In this document: positions 18,747 through 62,015 of the stretch, one piece after another | Layout: the number at the start of each line of letters is the position of its first letter | How positions within the stretch are numbered: position 1 is the first letter of the stretch | Virus record (IMG/VR): IMGVR_UViG_3300027759_004177 | Span: 1-64,000 of that record | Direction: 5' to 3' (one strand) | DNA: 64,000 nucleotides | The notes under the pieces: generated by a model | What the model was told of the DNA's origin: nothing | The model's input: the letters and a program-made list of their open reading frames with translations, nothing else | Database searches by the model: none | Made by a program: the position numbers and the translations under genes

Positions 18747-19388
18747 CGGTTTAATTTCTGATTTTTCGTACATGACTGTGTCAGTGTCACCCAGGGCCCA
18801 TTTGGCGTCTGTTTCCACACTCCATCTACGAGTGGCCACACGAAAGTCTGGCTGTTTGAGTTCTCGAGGATTGCTACTGGGTTCTAATATGATTAGTCTG
18901 TTGTTGGGTTGTGCGGCAAACTGTCCGTTATCACAGCGTATGAAATTGTAGCTCTTGTGATCTTCCACATCCTCTGAGAAGCCAGTATCAAGTGTGTTAA
19001 AGTCTGGATGTGCTGAGTCCACAGTAAACATGTATTCGCCTGACATCCAGGCTCCATTCTTGAGTTTGAACTTGCAACGCATACTTTGTAGTTGTGCTTT
19101 TTTGATCACAGTGATATCGTAACTGAGACAGTCCCATAACTGTAGGTAATCCAACGGTAGTGGTTCGCCCTCTATGGGTTTCCAGCAGTAAGCATGTAAC
19201 GGTAACTTGTCATACAAAGCACCATACTGATTGAGATAGCTTTCAATACGGAATGCTTGACCTCTTAAACTTTTAATGCTAACCCACCACACAGGTTCTA
19301 ATTCACCGTGACCTTGCTCAAAATCATACAAAAACTCTCTACGAACAAAACATTTTACAGCGGGTAAGTTAGCTACTATGTGACTCAT
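18732..19388 (-). CDS. hypothetical protein
   Basis: 218 aa ORF, ATGA-coupled. Confidence 0.75.
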   Translation of the reverse strand: MSHIVANLPAVKCFVRREFLYDFEQGHGELEPVWWVSIKSLRGQAFRIESYLNQYGALYDKLPLHAYCWKPIEGEPLPLDYLQLWDCLSYDITVIKKAQLQSMRCKFKLKNGAWMSGEYMFTVDSAHPDFNTLDTGFSEDVEDHKSYNFIRCDNGQFAAQPNNRLIILEPSSNPRELKQPDFRVATRRWSVETDAKWALGDTDTVMYEKSEIKPNTLP

Positions 19389-20161
19389 TCACAGTTCCAA
19401 CGACGTCGTGCCTTGCAAATAGCTTTGTCTGGAGTTTTAGCACACGAAATGTTGTGCATGTTCATTTGACCCTTGCTACGTGAGCAATAGCTCTTACGAC
19501 GTTTTGAGGCTTTGCCGCCCTTCTTTAACTTACTAGGCTTGGTAGTCACAGCAGTCTTTAACTTTGAGCCTGGATTCTCTCTACGATAGGCTTTGACAGC
19601 TTTGCGACTCATACCGTCGGTCTTGTCTTTCTTGTTGGCTTTTTGCCAATCTTCCATTACAGGAGTTGTAGTTGCAAATACGTATAGTTCATCATCAGTT
19701 AAACTTTCTAGGTCTTCCCAGATCACTTCTGCATCTACTGAATTGCGTTCAGCAAGATCGTCGATGATTGATTCAATAAGATCAAATTCTTCATTTACTG
19801 TATCGACTATACCGTTTTCATGTTGACTAATCATATAGTCCATAACATTAACAATCATTCCTTTGGCTTGTGCTATTTTAGCTTGGCACCACTCTGGCAA
19901 ATTTTCATTATCTTGTATGGCTTTTTCTAAATGGGTACTAACTCTTTGAATAGTTTGTAGATCATTTTTAAACATGCCAGCTTCGTCGTTGTATTCTCTA
20001 TCAAAGTTTTCGGCCACACTTTCGGCTGGCACACAGTTGTTGACTCTAACTCCGCCCTTGACCTTGGTCTTGGGGTTGCCAATTTTTTTACCTGTCCAAC
20101 ACTTGGGATCCAAGCGTGTTTTAGTAGCTTTAGCTTCTGTTATAAATTCATTAGATTTCAT
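19385..20161 (-). CDS. modular putative capsid-internal protein
   Basis: N-terminus MKSNEFITE resembles T4 capsid-targeting sequence MKTYQEFIAE; modules CW..NCVP, LPEWCQAKI, basic RRKSYC..KARRRWNC separated by VAE/VNE/VME. Confidence 0.65.
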   Translation of the reverse strand: MKSNEFITEAKATKTRLDPKCWTGKKIGNPKTKVKGGVRVNNCVPAESVAENFDREYNDEAGMFKNDLQTIQRVSTHLEKAIQDNENLPEWCQAKIAQAKGMIVNVMDYMISQHENGIVDTVNEEFDLIESIIDDLAERNSVDAEVIWEDLESLTDDELYVFATTTPVMEDWQKANKKDKTDGMSRKAVKAYRRENPGSKLKTAVTTKPSKLKKGGKASKRRKSYCSRSKGQMNMHNISCAKTPDKAICKARRRWNCE

Positions 20162-21408
20162 TTTTTCTTTCCTGATTTCATGTTGGCACACCAGTGATAC
20201 ATTCGAGCACGTTCACCTGATGCATTCTTTGCTTTTTTACGTAAACTAGTCACACTTCCTGAACAACTGGCACCCGAACGTTTAACACGACCTGGACGAC
20301 TTTTGCCTTTGACCTTACCGTCGGCAAAGTTTTCCGCTATATCTTGCTTGGCTTTGTTTGCTTGAAATATTTTCTGTTCTTCTGGAGTGGGTTTTCTTAA
20401 CAAGTGCAGGTATTGATCTACCGGCAACGGTTTGACTTCTGTAGGAGTGATCTCTTTTACACCTGGGCGAGAATACCATTCAGCATCTGCTGCCCCACGA
20501 ACAAATAATGGTCGTCCTTGTTCATCTTTAGTTGGTAGTATGTGTAGATAGACATTTTCACCGTGTCTGATCTTGCCACCAAAAAATATTAGATGAGGAT
20601 CTTTCTTCCATCCAAAAGTACCAGTATTGGAACCACGCTCGGCCAAACTGTAAGCTATAGCAAAGTTAGGATCATCTGTGGCATAGATAGCATTTTTATT
20701 ACTTTTTTTAGCACCACCTATGTCATGGGCTTGCCTTGGAGTCAGCGGACCATTGATTTCTTGTGTGGAACCATGATACAAAACTTCTGGATATGATTCT
20801 GAACCTTCTGCTATACCCGACTTGGACTCACCGCCGTCACCACCTTCACCGGAACCGCTCCCACCGCCGTAGTAGCCATATCCTGGAAAAAAGTATCCAC
20901 CACCACCACCGCGAGACTTGCGTTTCTTTTTACGGGATTCGGACAGAAATGTGTCAGCAAAGCGTTTGCAAAGTTCTAGTATCTTGGCATTTTTTGTTTC
21001 TATGCTGGTATCAGGATCTTCTTCGGGGTTTTTATAGCCACAGTACACATGTTCAATACCAAAATCATCCAATAGTTGTTGACAATCTTCACCGTAGCGT
21101 TCACGATGGTCTGGAACACGAGCCGTGTTGCAAGGACTCAAGGTAGTCACAACAATACACTCTGGTCCTGGGTTGGGAGTTCTGTCCAAGGCCGCACGCT
21201 CTGCATGTACACGTAGACCATTTTTGGTTGCATGATTGATGCCAAATGTTCTGGTGCCGTCGGGACAGATCACACAAGCCGCTACCATGCCAAAATATTC
21301 AGAATCTTTTTGTTGGCCTGCAAGAACCATCTCGCACAGTTCTGCAAGTATGGCATCTAGTTCTGACTCGGGGTCAAACTGGGCTGTAAGGATTTCTTGG
21401 ATAATCAC
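20158..21408 (-). CDS. modular protein: Zn deaminase + ADP-ribosyltransferase-like domain + basic C-terminal module
   Basis: HAERAAL...TTLSPC...C; YHGS...IYAT...AIAYS...AEWY; GIAE/DIAE linkers. Confidence 0.7.
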   Translation of the reverse strand: MIIQEILTAQFDPESELDAILAELCEMVLAGQQKDSEYFGMVAACVICPDGTRTFGINHATKNGLRVHAERAALDRTPNPGPECIVVTTLSPCNTARVPDHRERYGEDCQQLLDDFGIEHVYCGYKNPEEDPDTSIETKNAKILELCKRFADTFLSESRKKKRKSRGGGGGYFFPGYGYYGGGSGSGEGGDGGESKSGIAEGSESYPEVLYHGSTQEINGPLTPRQAHDIGGAKKSNKNAIYATDDPNFAIAYSLAERGSNTGTFGWKKDPHLIFFGGKIRHGENVYLHILPTKDEQGRPLFVRGAADAEWYSRPGVKEITPTEVKPLPVDQYLHLLRKPTPEEQKIFQANKAKQDIAENFADGKVKGKSRPGRVKRSGASCSGSVTSLRKKAKNASGERARMYHWCANMKSGKKK

Positions 21409-21450: not shown

Positions 21451-22500
21451 TCATTTTGGTTTGTATGTTTGTGCGTCAGGGTCTGGTTTAGAATTTCTAA
21501 TGTCAATCTTGACAGCCGGTGTTGGGTTGATTTTTTTTGTACTGGGAGTTTTGGGTGGAGTATAAGTTTGTTGAACAGCAAGCTCAGCTGGCTTGTTGAC
21601 CTGAATAGCTTCTTCCATTCCAAAATATTCTGGATTGTCACTGGCAAAATCACGCATGATGATACCAGCATTGGCATTGGCTTCATTTTCTTCATCAGTG
21701 CCAGTGTTGCCTGAATTGTCGTCTAATATACCAGCTAAGTTTTGTTTATGATGAGTAAGTTCGTGTGCTAAGGTACGCAACACATCAACAGGATGACGTC
21801 CAGCAGTGACCAAATACAAGCATTTGTTGTCGGCATCGTACGTGCCAAAACTGGTGTTCATTGGCCGGTCCAGTAGTTCTATCTTGGGCAGTTGTTTAAT
21901 ATCTAATTCTTTTTGTAGCCAAGGCAAGAACTTTTTTACAAATTTATTTGTCACGCTTTCGTTGATGCTTTCTCTGTAGACCGATCTGGCACGTTTGATA
22001 TAATTGCCTAACATTTGTACCTTGCGTTGTAAGAACACAAGATATTCGTCCATTTCTTGTTCTGTGGTGGGTGTAGGATAATCTAATTCTATGTCTGCTG
22101 CCAAACCGGGTGGTATGCCCATTCGTGTGCGTTCGGCTCGGTTGACCAATGTTGGTATGGTGTTCTGAACCAGTTCTATGATTTGATCCAATTTGGCACG
22201 TTCACGTTGTAGAGTCTTTAGATCTTTTTGTGTTTTGGGTTGGGCAACAGATGCGGGTTCAGTCATGGATGCCACGGGCGGTGTAGTCTGTGGTTGATTC
22301 AATTGACGTTTGATATCATACAACTGCGACAAGTTTTTGGCGGGTAACCCAAACTTGTGAGTGTCAATGGTTTCATTTTTTTTACGACCAGCACAATGAG
22401 CCCGTTGACTAAATCCTTTTGGATTAGCACAGTTGATAGAGCTTTTGTATTTCCGGCTCCACTTTTCATCTAGGGGCGAAAAAACTTCGTTAATTTTCAT
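21451..22500 (-). CDS. modular protein with zincin metallopeptidase domain
   Basis: RTLAHELTHHKQ and ENEANA; N-terminal MKINEV and KWSRKYK..C..C module. Confidence 0.7.
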   Translation of the reverse strand: MKINEVFSPLDEKWSRKYKSSINCANPKGFSQRAHCAGRKKNETIDTHKFGLPAKNLSQLYDIKRQLNQPQTTPPVASMTEPASVAQPKTQKDLKTLQRERAKLDQIIELVQNTIPTLVNRAERTRMGIPPGLAADIELDYPTPTTEQEMDEYLVFLQRKVQMLGNYIKRARSVYRESINESVTNKFVKKFLPWLQKELDIKQLPKIELLDRPMNTSFGTYDADNKCLYLVTAGRHPVDVLRTLAHELTHHKQNLAGILDDNSGNTGTDEENEANANAGIIMRDFASDNPEYFGMEEAIQVNKPAELAVQQTYTPPKTPSTKKINPTPAVKIDIRNSKPDPDAQTYKPK

Positions 22501-22934
22501 TTTGCTGTGGCACGTAGCATCCAACTATGTTTTCTATGAGCATCCATGCGTTCAGCAAGGAAATTACTGAAACCATGCTCGCCCGCTTGTTCAGCAACAT
22601 CATAAACTCGTTTCAGTAGTTTGACCATGTTGTCGCTATCTTGTAGTAATTCTTGTACCATGGCTTCGGCTGGAAGTATGCTGGTTTCATCTTCTATGCG
22701 GCTCAGCATGTTGAATCTGCTGCTGGAACCTGGTGCATAGGCACCCATAGCACGAATACGTTCAGCGAAGCCGTCTATGTTGCCGTAGACTTCTTCGTAG
22801 ATTTTTCCAAATAGATCATGCAGTTGGCCGAAGTCTGGACCTTCCACGTTCCAATGAAAGTAGTGTGCTTTTAGATAAAAAGTGTATTCGCTGGCAAAGC
22901 CAATCTTGGCCGCTTTGATTAATTGTTCGTTCAT
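22497..22934 (-). CDS. dps: Dps/ferritin-like protein
   Basis: HYFHWNVEGPDFGQLHDLF, DGFAERIR, KHSWML. Confidence 0.92.
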   Translation of the reverse strand: MNEQLIKAAKIGFASEYTFYLKAHYFHWNVEGPDFGQLHDLFGKIYEEVYGNIDGFAERIRAMGAYAPGSSSRFNMLSRIEDETSILPAEAMVQELLQDSDNMVKLLKRVYDVAEQAGEHGFSNFLAERMDAHRKHSWMLRATAK

Positions 22935-25183
22935 TTGATATCCTTGACGCTTTCTGTTAATTCACTGACCAGGCTGGCAATTTTTGTATTGCGTTCGTTC
23001 TGTAGTCGAGTCCAGTAGTTGGTAGTTTCGCCAAACTGCTCCAAGTCACGTTTCTCTTTGGCACGTTTTTTGGCGTAGTCAGTCTGTGGATTGCGTGGCA
23101 AGGGTTTGACAGGCTGACCAGCATTGACCTTACGCTCACGTTCACGACGCTTGAAAAAATCTGTTTGTGCTTCTTTAATATCTAGTCCGTATTTGTTTTT
23201 GTATAGATCCATCAGTTGTGGAATATACGCACGGGTAACACCGTAGTCGCTTTTCATTTTCATCTTACCCAATTCCATGGCATAAGCATCGTATGCGGCA
23301 TTGAGTACTTGGTCGTGTGTTGCTAACCCATCGGGCATACGTTCTAGTGCTCGTATTAGAATAGGATCTACACGATCGCCAGCTTCTGCTACACCTTCAC
23401 CTGCGTGTTTGAAGTATTGTACTTCACGTTCGTGTTTTTCTGCACCAGCTCGAGTTGGGAATGTGCCCAAGTTCTTGCCCTTACCACTGTACAAACGATA
23501 TTGACTACCAAGTTTACGAATGGTCTCATCTACAGCATTTTCATTCCAATAGTCATCTTTTGGATCTGTTTTGGCAGTTTCCTCGTCATACTCGATGTCA
23601 GCTAAATTCATACTATGCATACCATGGTTATATAAGTCTACAATAACAAAACGACCGCTTGGACTAAACTCAGACAGCCTGCCTGGTTTACCTTTAAATT
23701 CATTGGATCCTGTAACCTTAATAGGATCACCTACCTGTAAATCCGTATCGACTACCTTGGTGGTCACAGAGTATTGTTGTTCTACACTTTCTTTGGCCCA
23801 TTGGTCGTGTTCACTTGACCAACTATTTTGACCGTTGTGCCAACTATCTTCTTCCAGACCTTTGAAGTCAGGAGTGGGCAACTTATATTTTTTACTGAGT
23901 TGTTTGTCCAACAAGTAATAACTACGATCAGGGGCAGGGGCCTGGCTGATTTGAAAACGCTGTTGGTATTTGTGTGCAAAATCCTGACGCATGGTTGTTA
24001 TCATGGGATCGTTGGGGTTGGCATACACACGTTCTAAGAATATCAGAGCATCTGCATAGGCCTGATTGGTTGTTTTGTTGTCGGTCATTGGTACAACGTC
24101 ACCTTCACTGAACTGTAATGGCATTTGACTCAAATGTTGTGCTTTAAATTCTTTAAAATAATTGTGATCGGTAAACAACTGTTGCCATACTTGTGGACGT
24201 GTTTGTTCTGTATAGTCTGTGGCAATAGCACTAACAATTTGTTCAACTTCTTGGAATGTTAAATCTTCCCATTGTCCGTCGCCAAAGTATAATTTTGTAG
24301 ATTGGCTATGTGCCCATGCTTGTGAAAACGCTTGGTTATTATGTTGTGCAATGTTCTGCAAGTCAGCGGGACTAATTGCTTCTCTCATATTAACTCGTTG
24401 TTGATATGTGCCGGTATTAGCAGCATCCACTGGAAAACCAAGGCTGGATAATTGGTGCGAACGTTGTTGAGCTTCTGGATTACTAGGCATCTGCACAACA
24501 TTGGTGCCTGGTAATTCTTGTTGTGCAGGCGGGGCAGTTAATTGTTGCGCCATTTGTCCTATTGCATTGGATTGATTTTTTCCCTTGATTACTCTACCAG
24601 GCGGAGTAACTGCAGGTGCTAGTGTTGCTTGCGGAGCCGCAGGTTGTGTCTTGGCTGTTGCGGCACCTTGATCTTTGGCCTGTTGATAATTGGCCAATTG
24701 AGATACGCTGGCACCTGGACTAGGAGCAGCTACAGTCTTGGCGGGTTGGGTCGCTGTTTGTTTTGCAACTACATTTGAAATATCGGCAGGTTGATCTTTG
24801 TTTGTATCGTGTGAGGATTCAATGTCTTGCGCCATCTTGGCCGCTTGCTGTGGTGTCACGTTGGGCATGTTGGCTATTTGAGCATTTAGATCACGAAAGT
24901 CTTTTTCTTTACGACGCATGTCGTTCACTAGGTCATTGATCTGTTTGGTCTGTTGTTGATTTGTTTTGGTCTGTTGATCTAGTGCTTGATCTTGTTTTTG
25001 ATTCAAACTGTTTTGTATGTCAATGTACCCAAGTGCAGCTTCTTCAGGGCTTTTTGCAGCAGGCACAGCACGATACGCATTGTCAAGAGCATTTTTGACT
25101 CGTGCGTCTTGGCTGGTCCCGCCTACAAATCTGCCAGCGGCAGCATCTTGTTTTTTCTTTTCAAATAAATCAAATACAAACAT
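22931..25183 (-). CDS. large modular putative virion protein
   Basis: MFVFDLFE start, coiled coil, Q/A/P linker, KOW-like VGDPIKVTG, KGKNLGTFPTRAGAEKHE module; GVAE/IKE linkers. Confidence 0.65.
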   Translation of the reverse strand: MFVFDLFEKKKQDAAAGRFVGGTSQDARVKNALDNAYRAVPAAKSPEEAALGYIDIQNSLNQKQDQALDQQTKTNQQQTKQINDLVNDMRRKEKDFRDLNAQIANMPNVTPQQAAKMAQDIESSHDTNKDQPADISNVVAKQTATQPAKTVAAPSPGASVSQLANYQQAKDQGAATAKTQPAAPQATLAPAVTPPGRVIKGKNQSNAIGQMAQQLTAPPAQQELPGTNVVQMPSNPEAQQRSHQLSSLGFPVDAANTGTYQQRVNMREAISPADLQNIAQHNNQAFSQAWAHSQSTKLYFGDGQWEDLTFQEVEQIVSAIATDYTEQTRPQVWQQLFTDHNYFKEFKAQHLSQMPLQFSEGDVVPMTDNKTTNQAYADALIFLERVYANPNDPMITTMRQDFAHKYQQRFQISQAPAPDRSYYLLDKQLSKKYKLPTPDFKGLEEDSWHNGQNSWSSEHDQWAKESVEQQYSVTTKVVDTDLQVGDPIKVTGSNEFKGKPGRLSEFSPSGRFVIVDLYNHGMHSMNLADIEYDEETAKTDPKDDYWNENAVDETIRKLGSQYRLYSGKGKNLGTFPTRAGAEKHEREVQYFKHAGEGVAEAGDRVDPILIRALERMPDGLATHDQVLNAAYDAYAMELGKMKMKSDYGVTRAYIPQLMDLYKNKYGLDIKEAQTDFFKRRERERKVNAGQPVKPLPRNPQTDYAKKRAKEKRDLEQFGETTNYWTRLQNERNTKIASLVSELTESVKDIK

Positions 25184-25185
25184 TC

Positions 25186-26280
25186 TTATACTCCGCCCTG
25201 TTGTTTAGCTAATTGTGCCGCTGCTTGATCTTTTTGCATGCCTTTACTGATCAGTTGTTGTAACTGTTGACCCAATTGGGGATCTTTGATCAAATTTGCC
25301 ACAGGATCTGCCAGAGCACTGGCTGCATCTTTATCTTGTGATGATAATGGATCACTGTCGTCGGCCTTGCTTAAGGCCGCAGTTGCTTTTTGTATATTAA
25401 GATCCGGAACTTTTGATTTTAAATTTTGTAAATTTTTTGTGATGGTGTCAATTTCTTGACCAGCTTGTGTGTTCGTATTTGTGTTGCCACCTGTGGCTGT
25501 GCCACCCGAAGTCATTCCATAGGTACCAACTAATTCGTTCATGTAGGCTTCGTATTCTTCATCTACGGGCACACAGTTAGGAACCATGCGGTTGCCTTTT
25601 TTCTTCATACCAACTTGCTTGTGAGTATCCCAACATTTTTCATCTAGTTTGGATTCATCGGTGCCAACCAGGCGTCCTGTAAAAGGATGTTCACCGGATT
25701 TTTTCTTGGTGGCCTTTTCTGTGCCACGCACCTGATCACCGGGACGTTGCTTGGGATTGGCAAAACTGAATTTGCCACCTTCTTTGATTAGTCCGGCACG
25801 ACGTGCCGCAAATTCAAGATCAAGACGACGTTGTTTATATTCTGGATAAAACTGAGCCATCTTTGGATTTTGTAACGCCTGATCAATTGCATCTAGTTTG
25901 GCATAGTAGTCGGACAGAGTATTCAACTTGTTGTGGCCACCACGATTGACCGAAGCATGTGCCTTGGGATCATCTACGTAACTACCATCATCGTCGGTGC
26001 TTTCATCAAATTCAACGTTGTAATCTTTCTGCAATTGATCAACAACACGATCAAAGATTGGTTCAAAATCGTCTTTGGCATGTAGTCCAGTGTCAATTAC
26101 TACTTCATCATAATAATTGTGAATAATTTCACTTACGTATTTTTCAACTTCATCTTTTGGATGTGCATACACATCGTAAATGTCGACTCGACCGTTAACA
26201 ATATCTTGAATCAATAAGTCAGCCTCGGACATCGATTCTTCAACTCGTTTGAGAGATTCTAAAATTTGGTAGATATCCAT
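25186..26280 (-). CDS. modular putative virion protein
   Basis: MDIYQILE start; KCWDTHKQVGMKKKGNRMVPNCVP module shared with 19385..20161. Confidence 0.65.
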   Translation of the reverse strand: MDIYQILESLKRVEESMSEADLLIQDIVNGRVDIYDVYAHPKDEVEKYVSEIIHNYYDEVVIDTGLHAKDDFEPIFDRVVDQLQKDYNVEFDESTDDDGSYVDDPKAHASVNRGGHNKLNTLSDYYAKLDAIDQALQNPKMAQFYPEYKQRRLDLEFAARRAGLIKEGGKFSFANPKQRPGDQVRGTEKATKKKSGEHPFTGRLVGTDESKLDEKCWDTHKQVGMKKKGNRMVPNCVPVDEEYEAYMNELVGTYGMTSGGTATGGNTNTNTQAGQEIDTITKNLQNLKSKVPDLNIQKATAALSKADDSDPLSSQDKDAASALADPVANLIKDPQLGQQLQQLISKGMQKDQAAAQLAKQQGGV

Positions 26281-26465
26281 TACTTGACCTTTTTAACCTT
26301 GACTGTGCCGCCTGGAGTTTTTTGATTGCTGTAGGACTTTTGACGCTTAATAAGATCTGTAGTAGCCCCGCCTAGCCCTGTAGAGACAGTGGCCACGCTA
26401 GACGAGCCTGTAGCGCCACCAGATGCATTTTCTTTTAGAGTTTTAATAAATTCAGAGCTTTTCAT
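26280..26465 (-). CDS. small putative capsid-internal peptide
   Basis: MKSSEFIKTLKE-NASGG; CTS-like N-terminus. Confidence 0.6.
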   Translation of the reverse strand: MKSSEFIKTLKENASGGATGSSSVATVSTGLGGATTDLIKRQKSYSNQKTPGGTVKVKKVK

Positions 26466-26491: not shown

Positions 26492-26764
26492 TTATTCTGT
26501 TGTAGTGAACTCGGGCTTAGAAGCTACCCCGTCCACTGTTATATCTTTAATCTGTATCTTGCCGTTGTTACCTATTTGTTCTATACGCAGTTGATGAACT
26601 CCGGGTTTGAGATCAACCACGATGTTTTCTCTAATAAAAACTTCATGCCCGGGCCATCCAAAGTCGCGTTCGGTCAGCAAATCACCGTCTACATACACCC
26701 TGTAGCTCGGGCTAACCTCACCCCAGTGGGCATACACATCGGCGGTTATTAGGTGTTGTTTCAT
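26492..26764 (-). CDS. hypothetical beta-rich protein
   Basis: 90 aa ORF, ATGA-coupled. Confidence 0.65.
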   Translation of the reverse strand: MKQHLITADVYAHWGEVSPSYRVYVDGDLLTERDFGWPGHEVFIRENIVVDLKPGVHQLRIEQIGNNGKIQIKDITVDGVASKPEFTTTE

Positions 26765-27963
26765 TTGGGATCAAACATCAATTTGGCACGTTCTGCTTCA
26801 AGATCGGCAATTTTTTGCTTTAGTTTAGCCACATAATCAGCGGGTAGCTTTTCTGTAGCAATACGCTCTTTGATGGAATCAATATCTTGATTGATATACT
26901 TGATATGTGTCAAAATTAAATTGTCAACTTCGCTTTCGCTTAATCTATTTCTTGCCCAAGCAATATCTTCTTCGGCCAAGTTAAAAGCACGTAGATTTTT
27001 GCCTGGTGTGCCAGGACCAACATCCACTGTCATGCTGGTGCTGTAACGTGGATCACGGGCTTGCTTTTTATTTTTAGCTACTACACCTACTCCAGCAGCT
27101 TCTTCTTTGACAGTTTTTAATCTGTTTACAAAATCATGTAGTTCTTGTTTTTCTTTGGCGCTCAATGAACCGGGATTTTTTTTGTAACGATATGCCAATA
27201 GTTTATAGTAACCATGTTCGCTGTTGGGCTTGCTGGGCACAAAATGACTGACTGCTTCTGCAACAGGTTCTTCTTTGGGTACTGTGACTTTTTGTAGTTT
27301 GGTTTTGTTGGGCAATGGTGCAGGAGCCACATCAACAGCCGGTAAAAGATTATTGTTCATAATCTTTTCTGCTTCGTGTGTGTACTTGCCGTATAAATCT
27401 TTGATTATTTGCTGGCGTTGTGCATTATTGGCTTTGCTGTATAAATCTCTAATGCTGGTAGCACCTGTAATGGATTGCCCCAGTATTTCAAATGGCTCTA
27501 CATTGACCACTTGAATATATGCGTGTTTGTCTGCACTTTCAACTCGACTCAGATCATCGGGTAATGGTTGCAGTTTTGCTGGTGAACCGTCTTTGTTAGT
27601 GCCTTTGGCAAACAAGCTGGGTTTTTCGTCTACATCTTTTTGGCTAACAGGGAAGATCATGACAGTATTGCCGAGATCTTGTATGCCCAAGGCTTGAGCA
27701 GCTACCGCAGGGTTGTAATTGTTTGACAGTTGTAGTATGCGGTCAGATGGAATTCCCATCAAATTCATAAAATAAATTCGATCGGAAAGTTTAAAAGGGC
27801 TTTTTGGGGGGTCTACTTTGCCGCTAGTACCAATATAAACGTTGTTACGTCCATATGTACTGACTAGATTATTATAGACTATTGCGTGGCCACGATGGAA
27901 AGGCTGGAATCTTCCACAAAAAATAACAACAACACGGCGTTCTGCTAGTTCATTAAGAAACAT
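26761..27963 (-). CDS. HxGH nucleotidyltransferase (cytidylyltransferase-like) with modular C-terminus
   Basis: GRFQPFHRGH, SPF...DR, GATSIRD. Confidence 0.75.
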   Translation of the reverse strand: MFLNELAERRVVVIFCGRFQPFHRGHAIVYNNLVSTYGRNNVYIGTSGKVDPPKSPFKLSDRIYFMNLMGIPSDRILQLSNNYNPAVAAQALGIQDLGNTVMIFPVSQKDVDEKPSLFAKGTNKDGSPAKLQPLPDDLSRVESADKHAYIQVVNVEPFEILGQSITGATSIRDLYSKANNAQRQQIIKDLYGKYTHEAEKIMNNNLLPAVDVAPAPLPNKTKLQKVTVPKEEPVAEAVSHFVPSKPNSEHGYYKLLAYRYKKNPGSLSAKEKQELHDFVNRLKTVKEEAAGVGVVAKNKKQARDPRYSTSMTVDVGPGTPGKNLRAFNLAEEDIAWARNRLSESEVDNLILTHIKYINQDIDSIKERIATEKLPADYVAKLKQKIADLEAERAKLMFDPK

Positions 27964-29531: not shown

Positions 29532-30263
29532 TTATTTATTAGACAATACTACCAGCTCATGATAATTTGAAACTATGCCCGGGCTTATCAAGTTAAGGAA
29601 TGTGATCATGTTGACATCGTTGGAGTAAAAATACAAGTTCCAGATAAATCCTGTGCTTTTGAACAGCATGTCTCTGGCACTTCGTGGTATTTGAACCTGT
29701 TCCGTACCCTGGTTTTCTAAATAGTTTAGTAAATTTTGTTTGATTTCGGGAGTATATCTACCATCTTTTAAGATTATCTTGTACCGGTACCCGTTGTTTT
29801 CTTTGCGTATGATAGCTCCAGCATTTAATACCGATTCGGCTGCCTGGTCGGCAGGTCCGGAGATTGATCGTACGTACTGTTTTTGGTTGGCAGCAAAATG
29901 AGTATTGACAAAGGTTTGCAATGCTGAATCGGAATCGGCGTAAACTTGAATCATGGGTTCTTCTATCCGCAATTTTATTCCCAGACCACGGTCGTGCCTG
30001 ACTTCTCTCAACATGGTCAAAAACTCAACATCGGCATTTTCTAAATCTCTATGATTTCTATTTCCCCACCAACCGCCATAATTGACGTTCTTTGCCATGA
30101 CTCGGCGATGTTCAAGTGCCGCATCCATTGGTCCTTTGGCATCGATCAAGCGACCTGCAGGACAGTATACAACTAACTTGTATAAGAATTTACCATAAAA
30201 CTTTTTGACGGTATGGTCTACAGTAATTTTAGGATTGCACTGAATCCAGAACGATATATCCAT
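29532..30263 (-). CDS. hypothetical protein
   Basis: 243 aa ORF. Confidence 0.7.
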   Translation of the reverse strand: MDISFWIQCNPKITVDHTVKKFYGKFLYKLVVYCPAGRLIDAKGPMDAALEHRRVMAKNVNYGGWWGNRNHRDLENADVEFLTMLREVRHDRGLGIKLRIEEPMIQVYADSDSALQTFVNTHFAANQKQYVRSISGPADQAAESVLNAGAIIRKENNGYRYKIILKDGRYTPEIKQNLLNYLENQGTEQVQIPRSARDMLFKSTGFIWNLYFYSNDVNMITFLNLISPGIVSNYHELVVLSNK

Positions 30264-32523
30264 TAGAGTCTATTATAGGTGCTGTTGGGGTAAATTGTCC
30301 CAATACATTAAATTCAAACTTGTCTTCAATCCAGTCTACTTCAATCACAGTATTGGCTGGAATGTTTTCAAACAAGATCTTTTTACTCAGGGGCACTTTG
30401 ATCAAGTCGCTAATCTTACGTCCCAAGGGTCTAGCACCCATCTTGCTGTCGTAGCCAACTTCAACCAGGTGCTCCACTGCTGTTTCTGTAAGGCGTATTT
30501 TGATACTTTTCTCACTCAACAACTCATTGACTTCGTTGATAAACTTGGCCACAATCTTCTTGATGCTTACTGTGTCTAGTTTATTAAACTTGCAAATACC
30601 ATCCAAACGATTGCGGAACTCGGGCTTAAAGAAGTCTTTGACTGCTCGGTCATCTTCGGTTGATTTAGCAAGCTCACGTCCAAATCCAATGTTGTTCTTT
30701 TCATTGTCTGCGGCACCCAAGTTACTGGTAAGGATAACAATAGCGTTGCGAGCATCTGCTTTCTTACCATTGCTTGAAGTGATAGTGCCTTCGTCCATCA
30801 ACTGCAACAAAATATTAGTCACATCTGGGTGTGCCTTTTCTACTTCGTCAAACAGTATAATACAGTTGGGATTTTTTTCAATGTCGCTGATCAACATGCC
30901 GCCACCTAGGTTTGAGTCGTCGTAGCCCACATAACCCGGGGGAGCACCAATCAACTTGGCCAGTGCATGTTTCTCTTGATACTCACTCATGTCGTAGCGT
31001 AGCAGTTTCATTCCCATACCTTCAGCCAACAGTTTGGCAAGTTCTGTCTTACCTGTACCTGTGGGTCCTAAAAATAAGAAGTTGCCGATAGGCTTATTCA
31101 TTGCTTTGAGTCCAGCACGGGCAACATAGATCTTTTCTAGCACAGTTTCAACCACTTGATCCTGTCCGTACAGTTTGCCTTTAACTGTTTGTTCTAGGTC
31201 CACCAGAGTCTTGGTGCTTTCGCTACCAATTTGTTCTGCTGGAATTTTTGTAAACTTGCTGATAATATCTACGATGTGGTTTTTACGCACAGTCCAGGCC
31301 AGGGCATTGATTTTTAAACGTGCGGCAGCTGTGTCTATTAGATCGATGGCTTTGTCTGGTAGCTTTTTGTCTGGTTGGTAGCGTACACTGAGTTCTACTG
31401 CGGCATCAATGGCTTCGTCGCTGATACTGCCACCGTGGAACTTTTCAAAGTATTCACGCAGGCCACGCAGGATTTCTTTGGCCACAGGGATAGTGGGCTC
31501 TTCAATGGTCATCCTGCAGAAGCGACGCATCAAGGCACGATCTTTTTCAAAGCTCTGTGTGTATTCTTCCCAGGTTGTACTAGCAATAACCTTTAGTTGC
31601 CCTTTGCTTAATGCAGGTTTGATCATGTTGGCAAAGTCCACTGAGCTGTTACTGCCAGAACCGGCGCCACGCATTTGATGTGCTTCGTCAATGAACAGGA
31701 TACATTTGCCCTTGGCCTGCAATGCACCAATCACATCTTTGAACTTTTCTTCAAACTCGCCACGGTACTTGGATCCTGCTAGCAAACTGGCAATGTCAAG
31801 GTTGTAAACAACATAATCTTTAAGGTATTCGGGCACACGTCCATCATTGATGTTACGTGCTAGTCCTTCAGCAATGGCAGTTTTACCTACACCTGCATCA
31901 CCCACCATCAACACATTACTCTTGTTGCGTTTGGCAAGCACCTGTGCAATTTCTTCTAGCTCAAACTCACGTCCTACCACAGGATCAATCTTGCCTTCCT
32001 TGGCAGCCACGTTTAAGTTTTCACAATATTCTTTGAGAATTTCATCTGATCGCACATTGGGACTTACACGACGTCCTTTGGTTTCCACATAGTTTTCGTT
32101 GTAGAAGTCTACTATATGGCCTCGTTCTAACCCATACTTGATAAAGAAGTAACTGGCATGACTGTTTGATTCGGATGCAATGCTTAAGAAGATGTCAATG
32201 ACCTGTACATGGTTACGACCACTGAACAGGACCTGTGTGAATGCACGATTAAACACACGCTCTAAAGCATGTGTTTTTTTAGGATCTTTGGCAGATTCTA
32301 AATCACCACTGGCGATGTATGTTTGTTTGCCGAGATATTCTTCAAGGTCGGCCAACAAAGAATCAACATCGGCACCATAAGCAACCAGTAGATCATTGAA
32401 TGGTTTAAAACTGACCAAACCATGTGCCAAGTGCTCTAATGTTACGTATTCGTGATTGTATCTTTTTGCGGTATCAGTTGCGTTGGCAATAACGATTTCA
32501 ATTTCGGGATTGTGTTGTATCAT
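30229..32523 (-). CDS. clpA: ClpA-type AAA+ unfoldase
   Basis: Clp N domain, Walker A GDAGVGKT and GPTGTGKT, no middle domain, IGF loop (NNIGFG). Confidence 0.9.
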   Translation of the reverse strand: MIQHNPEIEIVIANATDTAKRYNHEYVTLEHLAHGLVSFKPFNDLLVAYGADVDSLLADLEEYLGKQTYIASGDLESAKDPKKTHALERVFNRAFTQVLFSGRNHVQVIDIFLSIASESNSHASYFFIKYGLERGHIVDFYNENYVETKGRRVSPNVRSDEILKEYCENLNVAAKEGKIDPVVGREFELEEIAQVLAKRNKSNVLMVGDAGVGKTAIAEGLARNINDGRVPEYLKDYVVYNLDIASLLAGSKYRGEFEEKFKDVIGALQAKGKCILFIDEAHQMRGAGSGSNSSVDFANMIKPALSKGQLKVIASTTWEEYTQSFEKDRALMRRFCRMTIEEPTIPVAKEILRGLREYFEKFHGGSISDEAIDAAVELSVRYQPDKKLPDKAIDLIDTAAARLKINALAWTVRKNHIVDIISKFTKIPAEQIGSESTKTLVDLEQTVKGKLYGQDQVVETVLEKIYVARAGLKAMNKPIGNFLFLGPTGTGKTELAKLLAEGMGMKLLRYDMSEYQEKHALAKLIGAPPGYVGYDDSNLGGGMLISDIEKNPNCIILFDEVEKAHPDVTNILLQLMDEGTITSSNGKKADARNAIVILTSNLGAADNEKNNIGFGRELAKSTEDDRAVKDFFKPEFRNRLDGICKFNKLDTVSIKKIVAKFINEVNELLSEKSIKIRLTETAVEHLVEVGYDSKMGARPLGRKISDLIKVPLSKKILFENIPANTVIEVDWIEDKFEFNVLGQFTPTAPIIDSNGYIVLDSVQS

Positions 32524-32531
32524 AAAAATAT

Positions 32532-33374
32532 TTATTGAGGGTTGAGTAAATTGCGTACAATTTCTAGTTGTGGTTCAGATAAATCTTGTGGTACAGTTAT
32601 TACAACTTCAGCATAAAGATGTCCACGTGCTTCAGTATTCATTTGATATAAGCCTTGATTGTGTATTCTAAATCTTGTGTTTGGTTGTGTACCAGGCGGC
32701 ACAGTTAACTCAAATTCTCGACCATCTAATCCAGAGACTCGTACCAGGCCACCTGTTATTGCTAACAAACAGTTTACACTAACCGGGGTATATAAGTCAA
32801 TATTATTGACAATAAAATTTTCGGCTGGGTGTACATTAAATTGGACATATAGGTCTCCACGTGGAATGGTGTTAAATAGGTTATCTCCTAGTCCAGTGTA
32901 CTTGATATTGGTACCATTGGTTACACCTCTTGGTATGGTTACTTCTACTGTGCTTCGTTCTCCATTGGATGTGGCAACACTGATGGTCTTTGTCTGCTGT
33001 TCCAACGTGGTAACCAAAGGCACAGGTATTTCTATACGCAGATCTCGATTGCGACGTTGCTGTTGTCTAACTCCGCCAAACGGATCTCCAAAACCAAATT
33101 GTTTGAATATGGCGTCAATATCAGGGTGATTCATACCGGCAGAGGAAAAGTGCCATTGGTTAACACCGTTGCCACCAAATCCATTGCGTTGCATATCATA
33201 CTGTTGACGCCGATTATTATCGCTTAAGGTATCGTAGGCACTTTGTATTTCTTGAAATTTGGTTTTATCGCCACCTTTGTCGGGATGGTGTTGACTTGCA
33301 AGTTTACGATAAGCACGTTTAATCTCTTCCGCAGTGGCTTTTTCGGTAACTCCTAAAATATCGTAATAAGTCAT
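32532..33374 (-). CDS. DnaJ/CbpA-like co-chaperone (no zinc finger)
   Basis: J domain with HPD, G/F region, C-terminal DnaJ domain. Confidence 0.9.
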   Translation of the reverse strand: MTYYDILGVTEKATAEEIKRAYRKLASQHHPDKGGDKTKFQEIQSAYDTLSDNNRRQQYDMQRNGFGGNGVNQWHFSSAGMNHPDIDAIFKQFGFGDPFGGVRQQQRRNRDLRIEIPVPLVTTLEQQTKTISVATSNGERSTVEVTIPRGVTNGTNIKYTGLGDNLFNTIPRGDLYVQFNVHPAENFIVNNIDLYTPVSVNCLLAITGGLVRVSGLDGREFELTVPPGTQPNTRFRIHNQGLYQMNTEARGHLYAEVVITVPQDLSEPQLEIVRNLLNPQ

Positions 33375-53569: not shown

Positions 53570-53896
53570 TTATGTTGGGCTAAAACTGCTTCCGCAACCG
53601 CAAGTAGTAACTGCGTTGGGGTTTTTGATGGCAAACGTACTGCCGTATTGATCTTCTCGGTAGTCTATTTCTGCACCTTGCAAATATCCACCGCTCATGC
53701 TGTCTACTAGAACCTGTACACCGCTGATGTCTAACTCCCAATCATCTTCTGCTTGAGTATCATCTAGGGTGAAACCGTAGCTCATGCCGCTACAGCCACC
53801 GCCTTGTACAAAAACTCTGAGTTTTAAACTGGGGTTATTTTCCTCGGCCAAAATTTCTTGTAATTTTGCCACTGCTGATTCAGTTATTGTGATCAT
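53570..53896 (-). CDS. erpA: A-type Fe-S carrier (ErpA/IscA)
   Basis: [20 protein letters not shown]. Confidence 0.88.
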
Positions 53897-54435
53897 AATC
53901 TGCGATTGATGGCGTCCCAATCCATGATACGCCATAAGTTGTCTAGGTATTTTTCTTTGTTGGTTCCATAATCTATGGTCCATGCATGTTCCCACCAATC
54001 CACTAGCAGAGCTATGTCTGTGCGTTTTTGATGATTATGTATAGTTTTAATGGTTCCTGATTTGCTAAGATAAATCCAATTGGATCCTTGCAGTTTCATG
54101 GCTTCTTCTTTGAAACGTTTTTTAAAATCCACAAAATTTTTATGATTGCGTTCGATAATACTCAGTATCACGCCATGTGGTTTGCGAGTACCGGGGCGAG
54201 CAAATTGACTGAACCAGATACTGTGCAAGTAAGCACCGGCTTCGTTAAATGTACGATCTCCCTCTTTCTTATTGAAACGGTCAACATAGCCTTTGTACAA
54301 TTTACCGTAATGATTGTCTATGGTGGCCGCACTGGTCACAGGTGCCAGGGCAGTACGAGCATAGGGCAGTTTGATCTGCTCTAGGTCAACTTGGCTTTTT
54401 GCTTCTAGGAGGTCTAAGGTTTCGCGGAGGTCCAT
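53893..54435 (-). CDS. Fe/Mn superoxide dismutase
   Basis: LPY..L.P, H(YGK), H(SIW), DWWEHA metal ligands. Confidence 0.85.
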
Positions 54436-54439
54436 GCTA

Positions 54440-54664
54440 CTATTTAGCACGATACACCACACGTCCTCGCGTTAAGTCGTATGGGCTCATTTCTACGTCT
54501 ACACGATCGCCTAATAGTACTCGGATATTGTTTTGTCTAAGCCTGCCGCCGATTGTGGCAGTGATTTTTGATTGTTGCTCGTTGTCTAATATGATTCTAA
54601 ACATGGCATTGGGCAATACTTCGTCCACTACTCCGGACATTTTAATGATATCTTCTTTACTCAC
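54440..54664 (-). CDS. infA: translation initiation factor IF-1
   Basis: KED.I...[31 protein letters not shown]. Confidence 0.93.
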
Positions 54665-56901: not shown

Positions 56902-57143
56902 TTAAACTTTAAACTAAACAAGGTAGCATCTCGTGCTTCTGTAAAGTAAAAGGCAGCAACTTCGTCAAACATAGCACTGACATCTGAAGTTTCCACCAAC
57001 TCTGTCCAAAGCAAACTTAGGTTCTGTTCTTTGCACCAACGTTTCATTTTCCACATCACAAATGCAGGATCTCCAATTAACACTCGATGACATTGATCAA
57101 GTACCGCTTGCGGCGGAGTAAGGTCGGCCTTGTTTATATACAT
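56898..57143 (-). CDS. small paralog-family protein
   Basis: WC...FYFTEARDATLFSLKF. Confidence 0.65.
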   Translation of the reverse strand: MYINKADLTPPQAVLDQCHRVLIGDPAFVMWKMKRWCKEQNLSLLWTELVETSDVSAMFDEVAAFYFTEARDATLFSLKFK

Positions 57144-58720
57144 TATCGGTTGATGTGTTTGATCAATTCCCAGTGTGTTGGTACTAGGTCTAGCACACCA
57201 CGGGCCATTTCATCACGGTGTTTATAGAACAACCGAGCACGTGGTAACAGGGCTTCCGTGATTGGACGTGTTGGACAATCCGCAAATGCCCTCATGGTGG
57301 TGATAGTCTGTGCCCAGTCGTACTTGTTATAACGTGTATGGTCGAAGTCTTTCTCACGTCTGTAGATATCGCTAAAATGACGACCAAACCAGCCGTGTAC
57401 CATATCAACAGCTTCCTCACGTTTGGCGGCTTGCTCACGCCAAAACTCTGTGTCTGAGCGTTCTGTCAAGGCATAGTGTGCCCACAGGAAGTCTCCAGTA
57501 ATTTTAACTTCTCTGCTCATTAAACGACTTAGTACACGATCCTCGCCGTCGTTCCAATGGCCATCGTGCTTCTTAAGTACTGCCACTACTAGTTCATTGA
57601 TAAGTGTAGTAAAGCTAATGCTAGTAGCTTCCAAAGGTTCTAGGAAGTTTGAGCTCAATCCACAGGCGATCACGTTGCGATGAGCACTACGATCCAAGAT
57701 ACCATTATCAAACTTTAATGTAACTTTGTGATCCCAAGTCATTCCTAGATTCTGCCAGTAAGCACCTAGCTCTTCTACAGCTTGTTCTGTGGTAGTGTAA
57801 CGTGTATCATAAACGTAACCCGAACCCATGTCGTCACGCAAGGGAACTCGCCACGACCAGCCATGCTTGAATGCTGTGGCGTGTAGGTTGGGTACGCAGA
57901 ATTCTTCTTGTTTGCCTTGATAGTTTACACGTCCGCCAACGGCGTTTTTACAAGGTAGTCGATCTTCGTAACTGACCCATTTGGCCACGGGTCCAATTAG
58001 TAAACGCTTAAAACCTGTGCAGTCAATGTACAAGTCTGCGGTGTGAGTTTCTCCGCTATCGTCAACAATGCCAGTGACTTCTTCACGTTCGTTACGATCA
58101 ACTCGTACAATATGACGCTCTAAGGTACGAACACCGTTGGGAACGGCCACTTTGTCTCGAATAGTCTGTCCAACTTTGAATGCGTTGATGTTGTAAGCAT
58201 AGCCCGGCACACGACTTGAATACTGATGTCCCGCTAGATCTCTATGAGCACGACGATTTTGTACTAAATGATATGTGTCTGACGCATACTGATAGTAATC
58301 CGCTTCTGTAATGATGCCACGTTTAAGCATTTCAATCCAGTAGTCAGCTATGAGTACAGAGTCATCCTTGGCACAACTAACACGCTTGCCAAATTCATCT
58401 ATACTGTGGTTAATACCCTTTTCTGTAACAAAGTCGCCAAACCCGTGCCAGCGAGTGTCTGAACCTGTGCGCCACCCATCAAAGGTGACTCCGTATTTGA
58501 ATGTACTGCCCGATTCACGCATCCACACATCTTCTGATAATCCCATTTTTTCTAAATGATTACGGAACTGTGGTACTGTGGTTTCGCCTACACCAATGAT
58601 GGGAACTTCTTTACTGTGTATTACAGTAACTTCTATTCCAGGCAGTTGACTACTTAAAAAGCCAGCACTAAGCCAGCCCGCGGTTCCGCCGCCTACGACT
58701 ATGATTTTTTTAACTTGCAT
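57143..58720 (-). CDS. flavin-dependent tryptophan halogenase-like protein
   Basis: GGGTAGW, IGVGE, TFK, DCTGF, GWSWRVP, FLEPLEATSI. Confidence 0.88.
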   Translation of the reverse strand: MQVKKIIVVGGGTAGWLSAGFLSSQLPGIEVTVIHSKEVPIIGVGETTVPQFRNHLEKMGLSEDVWMRESGSTFKYGVTFDGWRTGSDTRWHGFGDFVTEKGINHSIDEFGKRVSCAKDDSVLIADYWIEMLKRGIITEADYYQYASDTYHLVQNRRAHRDLAGHQYSSRVPGYAYNINAFKVGQTIRDKVAVPNGVRTLERHIVRVDRNEREEVTGIVDDSGETHTADLYIDCTGFKRLLIGPVAKWVSYEDRLPCKNAVGGRVNYQGKQEEFCVPNLHATAFKHGWSWRVPLRDDMGSGYVYDTRYTTTEQAVEELGAYWQNLGMTWDHKVTLKFDNGILDRSAHRNVIACGLSSNFLEPLEATSISFTTLINELVVAVLKKHDGHWNDGEDRVLSRLMSREVKITGDFLWAHYALTERSDTEFWREQAAKREEAVDMVHGWFGRHFSDIYRREKDFDHTRYNKYDWAQTITTMRAFADCPTRPITEALLPRARLFYKHRDEMARGVLDLVPTHWELIKHINR

Positions 58721-61877: not shown

Positions 61878-62015
61878 GTTTTTCCTTTTTGATTTTAAAT
61901 ATGAAGTTTTGTGAAACTTGCTAGTGTTATTTACTAGAAGTGAGTTGACCTGCAAAAATAATTATCCCAATCATGCTTGGGTATTATATGCTACTATTAT
62001 GATATTGTTGGCTAT

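Follow-up and report, generated by a model that had tools for sequence, protein, structure and literature searches.

P0001 is an open reading frame (ORF) on the minus strand of the first 64 kb (positions 1 to 64,000, hereafter the window) of IMG/VR virus record IMGVR_UViG_3300027759_004177, which comprises 356,865 bp and is rated complete by CheckV. The phage is an uncultured T4-type jumbo myovirus of ~357 kb. With somewhat better than even confidence, we read the P0001 product from its sequence as a cargo polyprotein which would be targeted to the capsid, cut by the prohead protease and delivered together with the DNA. Catalysis and targets are predictions, and packaging, cleavage and injection are what we infer from comparative evidence, namely N-termini resembling a capsid-targeting sequence (CTS), a Peptidase_S77 (S77) gene in the genome, mini-proteins of the same family and candidate cleavage sites in disordered linkers. 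This comparative evidence speaks strongly for the packaged or injected polyprotein that had been proposed from the letters of the window alone (the original prediction).

The start codon of P0001 is GTG, with an AAGG ~8 nt upstream. A full-length AlphaFold2 (AF2) model, for which the alignment was built from natural end-anchored proteins, consists of three folded modules with disordered linkers between them; confidence is given below as predicted local distance difference test (pLDDT). The elements of the gene, including an ADP-ribosyltransferase (ART)-fold domain and a deaminase of the cytidine deaminase (CDA) fold, are the following:

20158..21408, minus strand: P0001 ORF of 416 aa and a stop codon; its product is predicted to be an effector polyprotein that is targeted to the capsid and processed by a protease
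21379..21408, minus strand: CTS-like leader of 10 aa (M/V-I-I-Q-E-I-L-T-A-Q) containing I-Q-E5; disordered, defined by homologue comparison
20938..21378, minus strand: CDA-fold zinc deaminase module, residues 11-157; defined by Pfam, invariant residues and fold matches
21199-21207, 21130-21135 and 21082-21084, minus strand: deaminase key residues H68/E70, P92-C93 and C109, respectively, placed by alignment
20806..20937, minus strand: linker, residues 158-201, with a KKKRK run, a Gly/Tyr-rich and an acidic Gly-rich part, ending in G-I-A-E201; disordered, pLDDT ~30
20332..20805, minus strand: predicted ART-fold domain, residues 202-359; defined by AF2 model, fold searches and conserved triad
20773-20775, 20683-20685 and 20479-20481, minus strand: triad codons H212 (YHGS), Y242 (IYAT) and E310 (AEW), respectively
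20806-20808 and 20332-20334, minus strand: codons of E201 (GIAE) and E359 (DIAE), each followed by a candidate scissile bond
20161..20331, minus strand: basic module of 57 aa (NFADGK...HWCANMKSGKKK), isoelectric point (pI) 11.2; defined by conservation, predicted helical hairpin

The evidence for processing comes from the junctions between the modules. According to BLAST mapping, each of the three modules is shuffled independently of the other two among hundreds of metagenomic homologues. Ahead of the basic module, P1 is Glu at every one of 101 non-redundant junctions, P3 is L/I/V/M/F at 98 of them (23 % expected), and P2 varies freely. The flanks of the ART cassette behave similarly: an [LIVMF]-x-E site occurs within 15 aa upstream in 84 of 88 non-redundant flanks (22 % expected), usually as (Q)GVAE followed by G, and within 32 aa downstream in 93 of 96 (45 % expected). 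The preference of T4 gp21 is Leu/Ile-x-Glu, and at the level of sequence the junction pattern matches this motif. Prohead proteases of the T4 family and of giant phages are known to cleave on the C-terminal side of Glu within short x-X-E motifs (PMC9026906, PMC5694885). Since P1 and P3 are fixed and P2 is free, a protease site is favoured over a recombination joint.

Within P0001, I-A-E201 and I-A-E359 are located in segments with pLDDT <50 (residues 162-203 and 357-371). They form the exact bounds of the middle domain, for which GIAE and DIAE had been named as borders beforehand, and they fit the motif of the T4-type prohead protease; the Lys/Arg then Gly/Tyr linker described at the same time is indeed found at residues 158-201 and is predicted to be disordered. 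The C-terminal end of the deaminase module is F-L-x-E (F-L-S-E157 in P0001) and represents a further candidate cleavage site; this is the junction in use where the basic module directly follows the deaminase. Shorter homologues read ...ESKSGIAE/NFADGK (the slash marks the bond), and in P0001 a 158-aa ART cassette is inserted exactly there. In long relatives a G[VILM]xE site recurs every 70-200 residues, and their cassettes, up to ~10 per homologue, include GNAT, ParB, NUDIX, DUF6934, DUF5872 and DUF6321. The strict QGVAE-type motif is unenriched elsewhere in the phage genome, only P0001 and a neighbouring 750-aa protein carrying it. Deaminase and ART cassette occur together only in P0001-P0005 and P0070, i.e., in six of ~90 deaminase-bearing homologues among the matches listed. 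Judged by these architectures, the pairing is a rare cassette combination and not a conserved functional pair; as a rare product of shuffling it gives no reason to assume functional coupling of the two enzymes. A low-complexity spacer, composed of a basic run, an aromatic/Gly-rich part (YYGGG, YPWWG) and then an acidic Gly-rich part (GEGGDGGGE), recurs before cleavage-type sites in many members.

A protease able to act on such sites is predicted from the same genome: Peptidase_S77 (PF03420), the gp21-type prohead protease, matched with 86 bits at C1:266576-267004 (protease gene at C1:266441-267073), so that accessible L/I-x-E sites in linkers and an S77 gene are present together. The phage also encodes a gp23-type major capsid protein with ...MLAE/N in its N-terminal region, and a scaffold protein rich in [LIVM]-x-E sites. 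Among five long IMG/VR contigs bearing the module three contain the S77 protease, including the single one rated at least 90 % complete. The closest isolates by family-B DNA polymerase are Sinorhizobium phage Phosso (51 %) and Agrobacterium phage Atu_ph07 (47 %); the value for the Yersinia/Serratia 350-kb phages is 42 %.

Targeting to the capsid is suggested by the N-termini. Family members start with MRAxEF[IV]xE, or with MI[IV][QN]EILTA when the deaminase comes first, and the complete MRAxEFIxE leader is found in members in which the deaminase is not N-terminal. Where the deaminase is internal in homologues, the first ~15 residues of P0001 lie outside the match. T4-type internal proteins of phage VR20 start with MKTYQEFITE, and the N-terminal 10 residues of IPIII are enough to have foreign proteins packaged and delivered (PMC9026906). 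A separate, independent set of basic-module proteins was drawn from IMG/VR; of the 55 whose 5' end is complete, 53 began with M-x3-[EDQ]-[FILVM], compared with 29 of 445 genes (6.5 %) of the phage studied here. Leaders of the type MR/MKxxE[FIL][IVL]xE are also found beyond the window (C1 82011-82412, 83707-86541, 147766-148191, 221236-221954 and 286484-289294); one of these genes encodes 936 aa and is located directly upstream of an ORF of 4190 aa (289294-301866).

The middle domain has no match of its own in Pfam, PHROG, NCBIfam or PDB sequences, and phmmer of P0001 together with profile searches against PDB sequences returned nothing meaningful for the ART-like or the basic module. HMMER, run exhaustively over 1.84 billion cluster representatives, yielded 156 relatives; many of them form part of multidomain proteins whose length reaches 1622 aa, and others stand alone with 140-170 aa. 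The original prediction had placed here an H-Y-E ART-like domain (YHGS, IYAT, AEW), reminiscent of T4 Alt but of another class. AF2 with a 64-sequence alignment returned an ART fold (pLDDT 88.9, predicted template modelling score 0.83), and three independent fold searches as well as the conserved triad speak for the assignment. Foldseek against the PDB listed TreTu/TreX, Tpt1/KptA, Arr, cholera toxin, pertussis toxin and MbcT at the top. VIA-align against 48,161 chains, which is independent of Foldseek, returned almost only ART-fold proteins among the top 50 (Z values: KptA 7.5, pertussis S1 6.2, TreX 5.9, diphtheria toxin 5.9, Arr 5.6), with PARPs, DarT, RES and ParT among the lower matches. 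Foldseek against AlphaFold Database clusters reached 8e-10 at best, with DUF3990 proteins at 3e-7; DUF3990 is a member of the Pfam ART clan (PMC7955679). Fold matches in the ESM Atlas were DUF6886 (template modelling score 0.61), Arr, DarT/PARP, DUF3990, FRG and ART-PolyVal.

H212 and Y242 are each conserved in 64 of 64 relatives; at position 310, 38 of them have E, 25 have Q and one has S, Glu being kept by every phage polyprotein member (P0001 among them) and Gln being the residue of the stand-alone branch. The triad residues are situated on core strands of the model (strands 209-214, 242-244 and 311-313), which thereby combines a split beta-sheet fold with His at the end of strand 1, Tyr in the core strand after it and Glu/Gln/Asp at the beginning of a later strand, as expected for the H-Y-[EDQ] division of the ART superfamily. 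The case for an ART fold is made by the uniformity of the hit lists and the conservation of the triad, the individual PDB scores being modest. The model thus supports an ART fold with an H-Y-E triad which lies outside every named Pfam ART family at threshold. DUF6886 (PF21820; gathering score 27 bits) gave weak matches in 28 of the 64 relatives (best 4.4e-5), none to residues 195-365 of P0001 at E <= 10 and none genome-wide. The hidden Markov model (HMM) of DUF3990 did not match the ART domain of P0001 even at E <= 10; ART-PolyVal matched weakly in two of 64 relatives and not in P0001. Membership in the T4 Alt/VIP2 group was rejected, as the triad is H-Y-E and not R-S-E and neither Pfam nor PHROG gave a match to Alt-type families; in this respect the foreseen difference from Alt proved right. 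A chain of the cyanophage A4 pre-ejectosome (PDB 9k3a_B, residues 1418-1645) aligned to the ART-fold model with Z 4.5, which hints at an ejection protein of another phage with an ART-like region.

For the N-terminal module a zinc deaminase with a displaced second Cys had been proposed, and this is borne out by the Pfam score, the invariant residues and the RibD-like PC-x(n)-C. PF00383 matched residues 39-124 with 28.9 bits and the N-terminal piece alone with 31.5 bits (gathering cut-off 25), and the HAE and PC-x(n)-C zinc/catalytic residues are in place. Across 40 aligned sequences no variation occurs at H68, E70, P92, C93 and C109; P0001 itself carries HAE and PC-x15-C, and all aligned members have 11-15 residues before the displaced second Cys instead of the usual x2 spacing. 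In a deaminase-family profile search the RibD deaminase domains rank first (2b3z, E 3e-5) and their PC-x8-C aligns, followed by yeast cytosine deaminase and T4 dCMP deaminase. Searches of PHROGs, NCBIfam and PADLOC gave only a weak dCMP deaminase/RibD signal. The deaminase fold of the full-length model matches dCMP, cytidine, cytosine, tRNA-adenosine and blasticidin deaminases. Orthology to RibD was rejected, since TIGR00326 reached 15.1 bits where its cut-off is 156, the alignment is confined to the deaminase core and a reductase domain is absent. A toxin-type nucleic-acid deaminase was likewise rejected, as no such family matched. Because the matches are of RibD, dCMP and cytosine type and include no toxin-type nucleic-acid deaminase, we infer that a nucleotide- or base-like compound is the better guess for the substrate.

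The basic C-terminal module (residues 360-416) is 80-96 % identical among proteins that are otherwise unrelated. In the full-length model it forms a helical hairpin with helices 386-395 and 398-411 (pLDDT 72-92). The basic two-Cys module seen in the original prediction is therefore real and conserved; its two Cys are not, being replaced by T/K and L/Q in divergent variants, so that they are not obligatory ligands. A zinc-ribbon reading of the two Cys was discarded for the same reason. A Rho-N/SAP-like helix-extension-helix (HEH) motif had been suspected, and no model supports it; the AF2 hairpin is compatible with it and not diagnostic. Against Pfam only spurious OAR-motif matches were obtained, and there was no PDB match. 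A pattern scan located the module at no fewer than 550 IMG/VR loci (at least 550), and in viral clusters of the ESM Atlas it stands C-terminally of NT5C nucleotidase, GNAT, pterin-4a dehydratase, NUDIX, ART-PolyVal and Cu/Zn superoxide dismutase (SOD) domains. Eight IMG/VR proteins of 64-72 aa consist of nothing but a leader, Glu and then the basic module; by analogy, this is the architecture of a small basic internal protein of T4. Its distribution marks the module as a putative promiscuous cargo peptide, which is placed behind many unrelated enzymes or alone behind a CTS.

Taken together, these features suggest the following course. P0001 would be expressed late, and its short, CTS-analogous N-terminal leader would bring it into the prohead during assembly. 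The T4-type (S77) prohead protease would then cut after Glu at [L/I/V/M]-x-E in the disordered linkers; as candidates, I-A-E201 and I-A-E359 are certainly placed, and I-Q-E5 and L-S-E157 are possibly used as well. The expected products are a zinc deaminase of ~17-21 kDa, an H-Y-E ART-fold enzyme of 17.6 kDa and a very basic helical peptide of 6.2 kDa, with the 44-aa linker peptide as a possible extra product. The basic peptide probably rides on the packaged DNA, and the pieces would be ejected with the DNA and be active in the first moments of infection. There the ART-fold enzyme may draw on the NAD+ of the host and modify a target of the host or of a defence system, and the deaminase may act on a nucleotide-like substrate.

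Several observations weigh against this proposal. The T4 late-promoter motif TATAAATA matches three times in the window versus 3.3 times expected and nowhere near P0001; being unenriched, it provides no support for late transcription. The start of P0001 (MIIQEILTA) fits M-x3-E-[FILV], has I-Q-E5 as its sole site and lacks an x-E at positions 8-10, which makes the targeting role of this leader weaker than that of the MRAxEFIxE proteins. The conserved junction peptides could partly be recombination joints. Neither P0001 nor two variants of the basic module gave a tblastn match in 50,697 GenBank phage records, and no cultured relative was found. As for the ART fold, Foldseek returned no PDB match of the model at E <= 1e-3, the best VIA Z of 7.5 is modest, no Pfam ART model matches P0001 itself, and the Gln at position 310 in 25 of 64 relatives implies that some family members may not be transferases.

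Some of these points would be expected if P0001 were an ordinary cytoplasmic multidomain enzyme that is never packaged, its junctions being linkers or recombination joints and its N-terminal motif a preference of translation initiation. Besides the absence of a late-promoter motif near the gene, this is in line with its location beside genes of replication and metabolism (DNA polymerase, 2-oxoglutarate (2OG) oxygenase, Dps) rather than head genes and with the housekeeping type of the partner cassettes NT5C, NUDIX, GNAT, SOD and pterin dehydratase. Internal protein genes of T4 are, however, also located outside the head cluster, in VR20 among regB, denV, e and nudE. Moreover, an invariant Glu at P1 (101/101), a hydrophobic P3 (98/101) and a free P2 are predicted by a protease site and not by a linker or a DNA joint, the CTS-like leader exceeds its 6.5 % background by far (53/55), and the mini-proteins of leader and basic peptide have no enzyme to link. 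We therefore regard a purely cytoplasmic enzyme as unlikely. Less likely still, indeed improbable, is a cargo that is packaged and processed and then works in the capsid or on the phage DNA instead of in the host, with the basic peptide condensing or neutralising packaged DNA and the enzymes serving as DNA-care or pool-cleaning factors. The pI of 11.2 of the peptide, which resembles the abundant basic internal proteins of T4 (PMC9026906), its occurrence behind SOD, NUDIX and nucleotidase domains and the Dps/ferritin gene conserved inside the cluster would agree with such a role. However, an ART needs NAD+ and a deaminase a substrate pool, neither of which is expected in a DNA-filled capsid, and the T4 precedents Alt and IPI act in the host after ejection (PMC9026906, PMC9503650, PMC5512222).

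The activity of the middle domain is a separate matter. That it has an ART fold without being a protein ADP-ribosyltransferase is doubtful, although of the alternatives considered this is the least unlikely one; it might be an NAD+ glycohydrolase, a modifier of nucleic acids or small molecules (Arr-, DarT- or KptA-like) or a non-catalytic binder of NAD or ADP-ribose. KptA/Tpt1 is the best structural match, Arr and DarT are among the matches, the third triad position is not uniformly Glu in the family, and the nearest families DUF6886, DUF3990 and FRG are uncharacterised or proposed NADases (PMC9503650). All phage polyprotein members including P0001 nevertheless keep Glu310 together with the invariant His and Tyr. 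The tetrad of Tpt1 is Arg-His-Arg-Arg, and here the invariant His is preceded by Y or W and not by the Tpt1-type Arg.

The favoured reading of P0001 as delivered cargo finds its closest parallels in T4. Alt is a packaged ART which is trimmed by gp21 at both ends (PMC9026906), and head-packaged ARTs are common in myoviruses (PMC9503650). Alt and P0001 share the ART fold, the T4-type myovirus, apparent uptake into the prohead, trimming after Glu at more than one site and ejection with the DNA, the last three being predicted for P0001. In contrast, the Alt clade (Alt/VIP2) is characterised by R-S-E (PMC5512222) and Alt is a single enzyme, whereas the ART of P0001 is of H-Y-E type, represents a cassette in a polyprotein and has no sequence similarity to Alt; its nearest relatives are DUF6886, DUF3990, Arr and KptA. 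By sequence and structure the nearest families of the middle domain are thus DUF6886 (PF21820) and DUF3990 (PF13151) in the ART clan, which differ in being mostly stand-alone bacterial proteins, the stand-alone branch having Q at the third triad position. The T4 internal proteins (IPI-III, ip5/7/10) are similar in their short leader ending in I/L-x-E (MKTYQEFITE compared with MRAxEFIxE and MKSNEFITE, the MIIQEIL of P0001 fitting in part), in small basic cargo, in hypervariable gene clusters and in an S77 protease in the genome. They differ in that the cargo of the P0001 family is modular, with enzymes plus a universal basic peptide, protease-type separators and lengths up to ~1600 aa; the mature parts show no homology to T4 internal proteins.

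Polyvalent proteins (PMC5512222) likewise combine two or more unrelated effector domains per polypeptide and are predicted to be virion-borne and injected; P0001, with deaminase, ART-fold domain and basic peptide, has the corresponding multi-domain composition. ART is the commonest enzymatic module among them and HEH/SAP-type DNA-binding modules are rare (PMC5512222, PMC9503650). They are recognised via MuF/portal, DarB, N4 virion RNA polymerase (vRNAP) and ArdC contexts, and processing by embedded metallopeptidases was proposed (PMC5512222). The P0001 family differs by its T4-type CTS and prohead-protease separators and by an ART that is not ART-PolyVal; MuF, portal, DarB, vRNAP and relaxase/ArdC domains were found neither in P0001 nor in the eight long homologues scanned. 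In phiKZ, 201phi2-1 and SPN3US many head-internal (inner-body) proteins are cut at multiple sites after Glu by a gp21-related protease (PMC5694885, PMC9026906), which resembles the processing proposed here. Those phages differ in their S/A/G-X-E motifs, long propeptides and a cargo of mostly paralogous non-enzymatic proteins plus vRNAP, whereas the P0001 family has L/I/V/M at P3 as in T4 and exchangeable enzyme cassettes as cargo. RibD-type, dCMP and cytosine deaminases have the CDA fold and the HAE...PC...C zinc chemistry in common with P0001; RibD has a PC-x8-C spacer, in contrast to the 11-15 residues of the P0001 family, which has no reductase domain.

According to the best-supported view, P0001 is a variation on themes already known from the internal proteins of T4 and from Alt, from polyvalent effectors and from myovirus ARTs that are packaged in the head (PMC5512222, PMC9503650). 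The grammar of CTS plus separators, the exchange of cassettes at scissile bonds, the universal basic peptide and the particular ART and deaminase families appear to be new, and a literature search with DUF6321 and the junction and module motifs found no relevant paper. It is about equally probable as improbable that these features represent an undescribed plug-and-play cargo system of uncultured T4-like jumbo phages, in which the leader imports polyproteins, the prohead protease frees the enzymes and cassettes are swapped at the scissile bonds. Separators of the (Q)G-V-A-E/G type would then be decoded into H-Y-E ARTs, RibD-like deaminases, GNATs, NUDIX proteins, nucleotidases, SOD and others; the 57-aa basic peptide, which would exist as a stand-alone internal protein as well, would be released from each polyprotein too, and P0001 would have arisen by an ART cassette being dropped into a deaminase-peptide precursor. 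If true, the CTS/gp21 logic of T4, known from a few small internal proteins and Alt, would extend to widespread modular delivery in environmental jumbo phages. This would open a reservoir of first-minute effectors, including a new phage branch of the H-Y-E ART fold and an unusual deaminase, both of which would be candidate agents of host takeover or of counter-measures to defences that rely on NAD+ or nucleotides. A leader combined with [LIVM]-x-E separators would furthermore provide a rule to predict virion-delivered cargo in metagenomic phages, as well as natural designs for packing several foreign proteins into T4-type capsids.

The genes surrounding P0001 form a cluster similar to those of internal proteins and are arranged as follows:

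19385..20161, minus strand: downstream gene, probable ATG at 20161 (ATGA overlap with the P0001 stop), CTS MKSNEFITE/A
21451..22500, minus strand: upstream gene, probable ATG at 22500, overlapping the stop codon of the Dps gene as ATGA, leader MKINEVFSPLDE/KW
22497-22934, minus strand: Dps/ferritin-like gene (PF00210, 84.6 bits), position kept in three related contigs (L004, L005 and L007)
26280-26465, 25186-26280 and 22931-25183, minus strand: three cluster genes with leader-like N-termini
26761-27963, minus strand: cytidylyltransferase-like gene starting with MFLNELAE (PF01467, 24 bits; GRFQPFHRGH), resembling nicotinamide mononucleotide adenylyltransferase (NMNAT) by eye

The downstream gene encodes a basic two-Cys stretch followed by an internal SVAE/NF site and ends in a DUF6321 C-terminus common to cyanophage proteins; its start, including the Shine-Dalgarno region, is similar at the nucleotide level to ip7 of coliphage VR20. 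The upstream gene product contains a basic two-Cys module (KWSRKYKSSINC...HCAGRKK), which in some homologues stands after the ENFADG module, and a weak HExxH metallopeptidase-like region (DUF6782, phrog_87). The leaders of the three cluster genes are MKSSEFIKTLKE/N (61-aa protein), MDIYQILE/S and MFVFDLFE/K, and the 750-aa protein additionally has GVAE and GLEE sites. In related contigs of 50-350 kb the order is conserved as NMNAT-like gene, large variable proteins, Dps/ferritin gene, a small variable gene, the deaminase-X-basic-peptide gene with a middle cassette X that varies between relatives, a variable gene, two small genes, in some cases a 2OG oxygenase gene, and the DNA polymerase gene. 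Since the cytidylyltransferase-like gene is conserved at the cluster edge in relatives, there may be a link to NAD+ supply near the ART-bearing gene. Elsewhere in the window host-like genes were observed, which encode IF-1 (54440-54664), an Fe/Mn superoxide dismutase (53893-54462), a ClpA/B-type AAA+ chaperone (30229-32523), DnaJ (32532-33374), a Gram-negative porin (Porin_4, 60726-61955) and a tryptophan halogenase (57143-58720).

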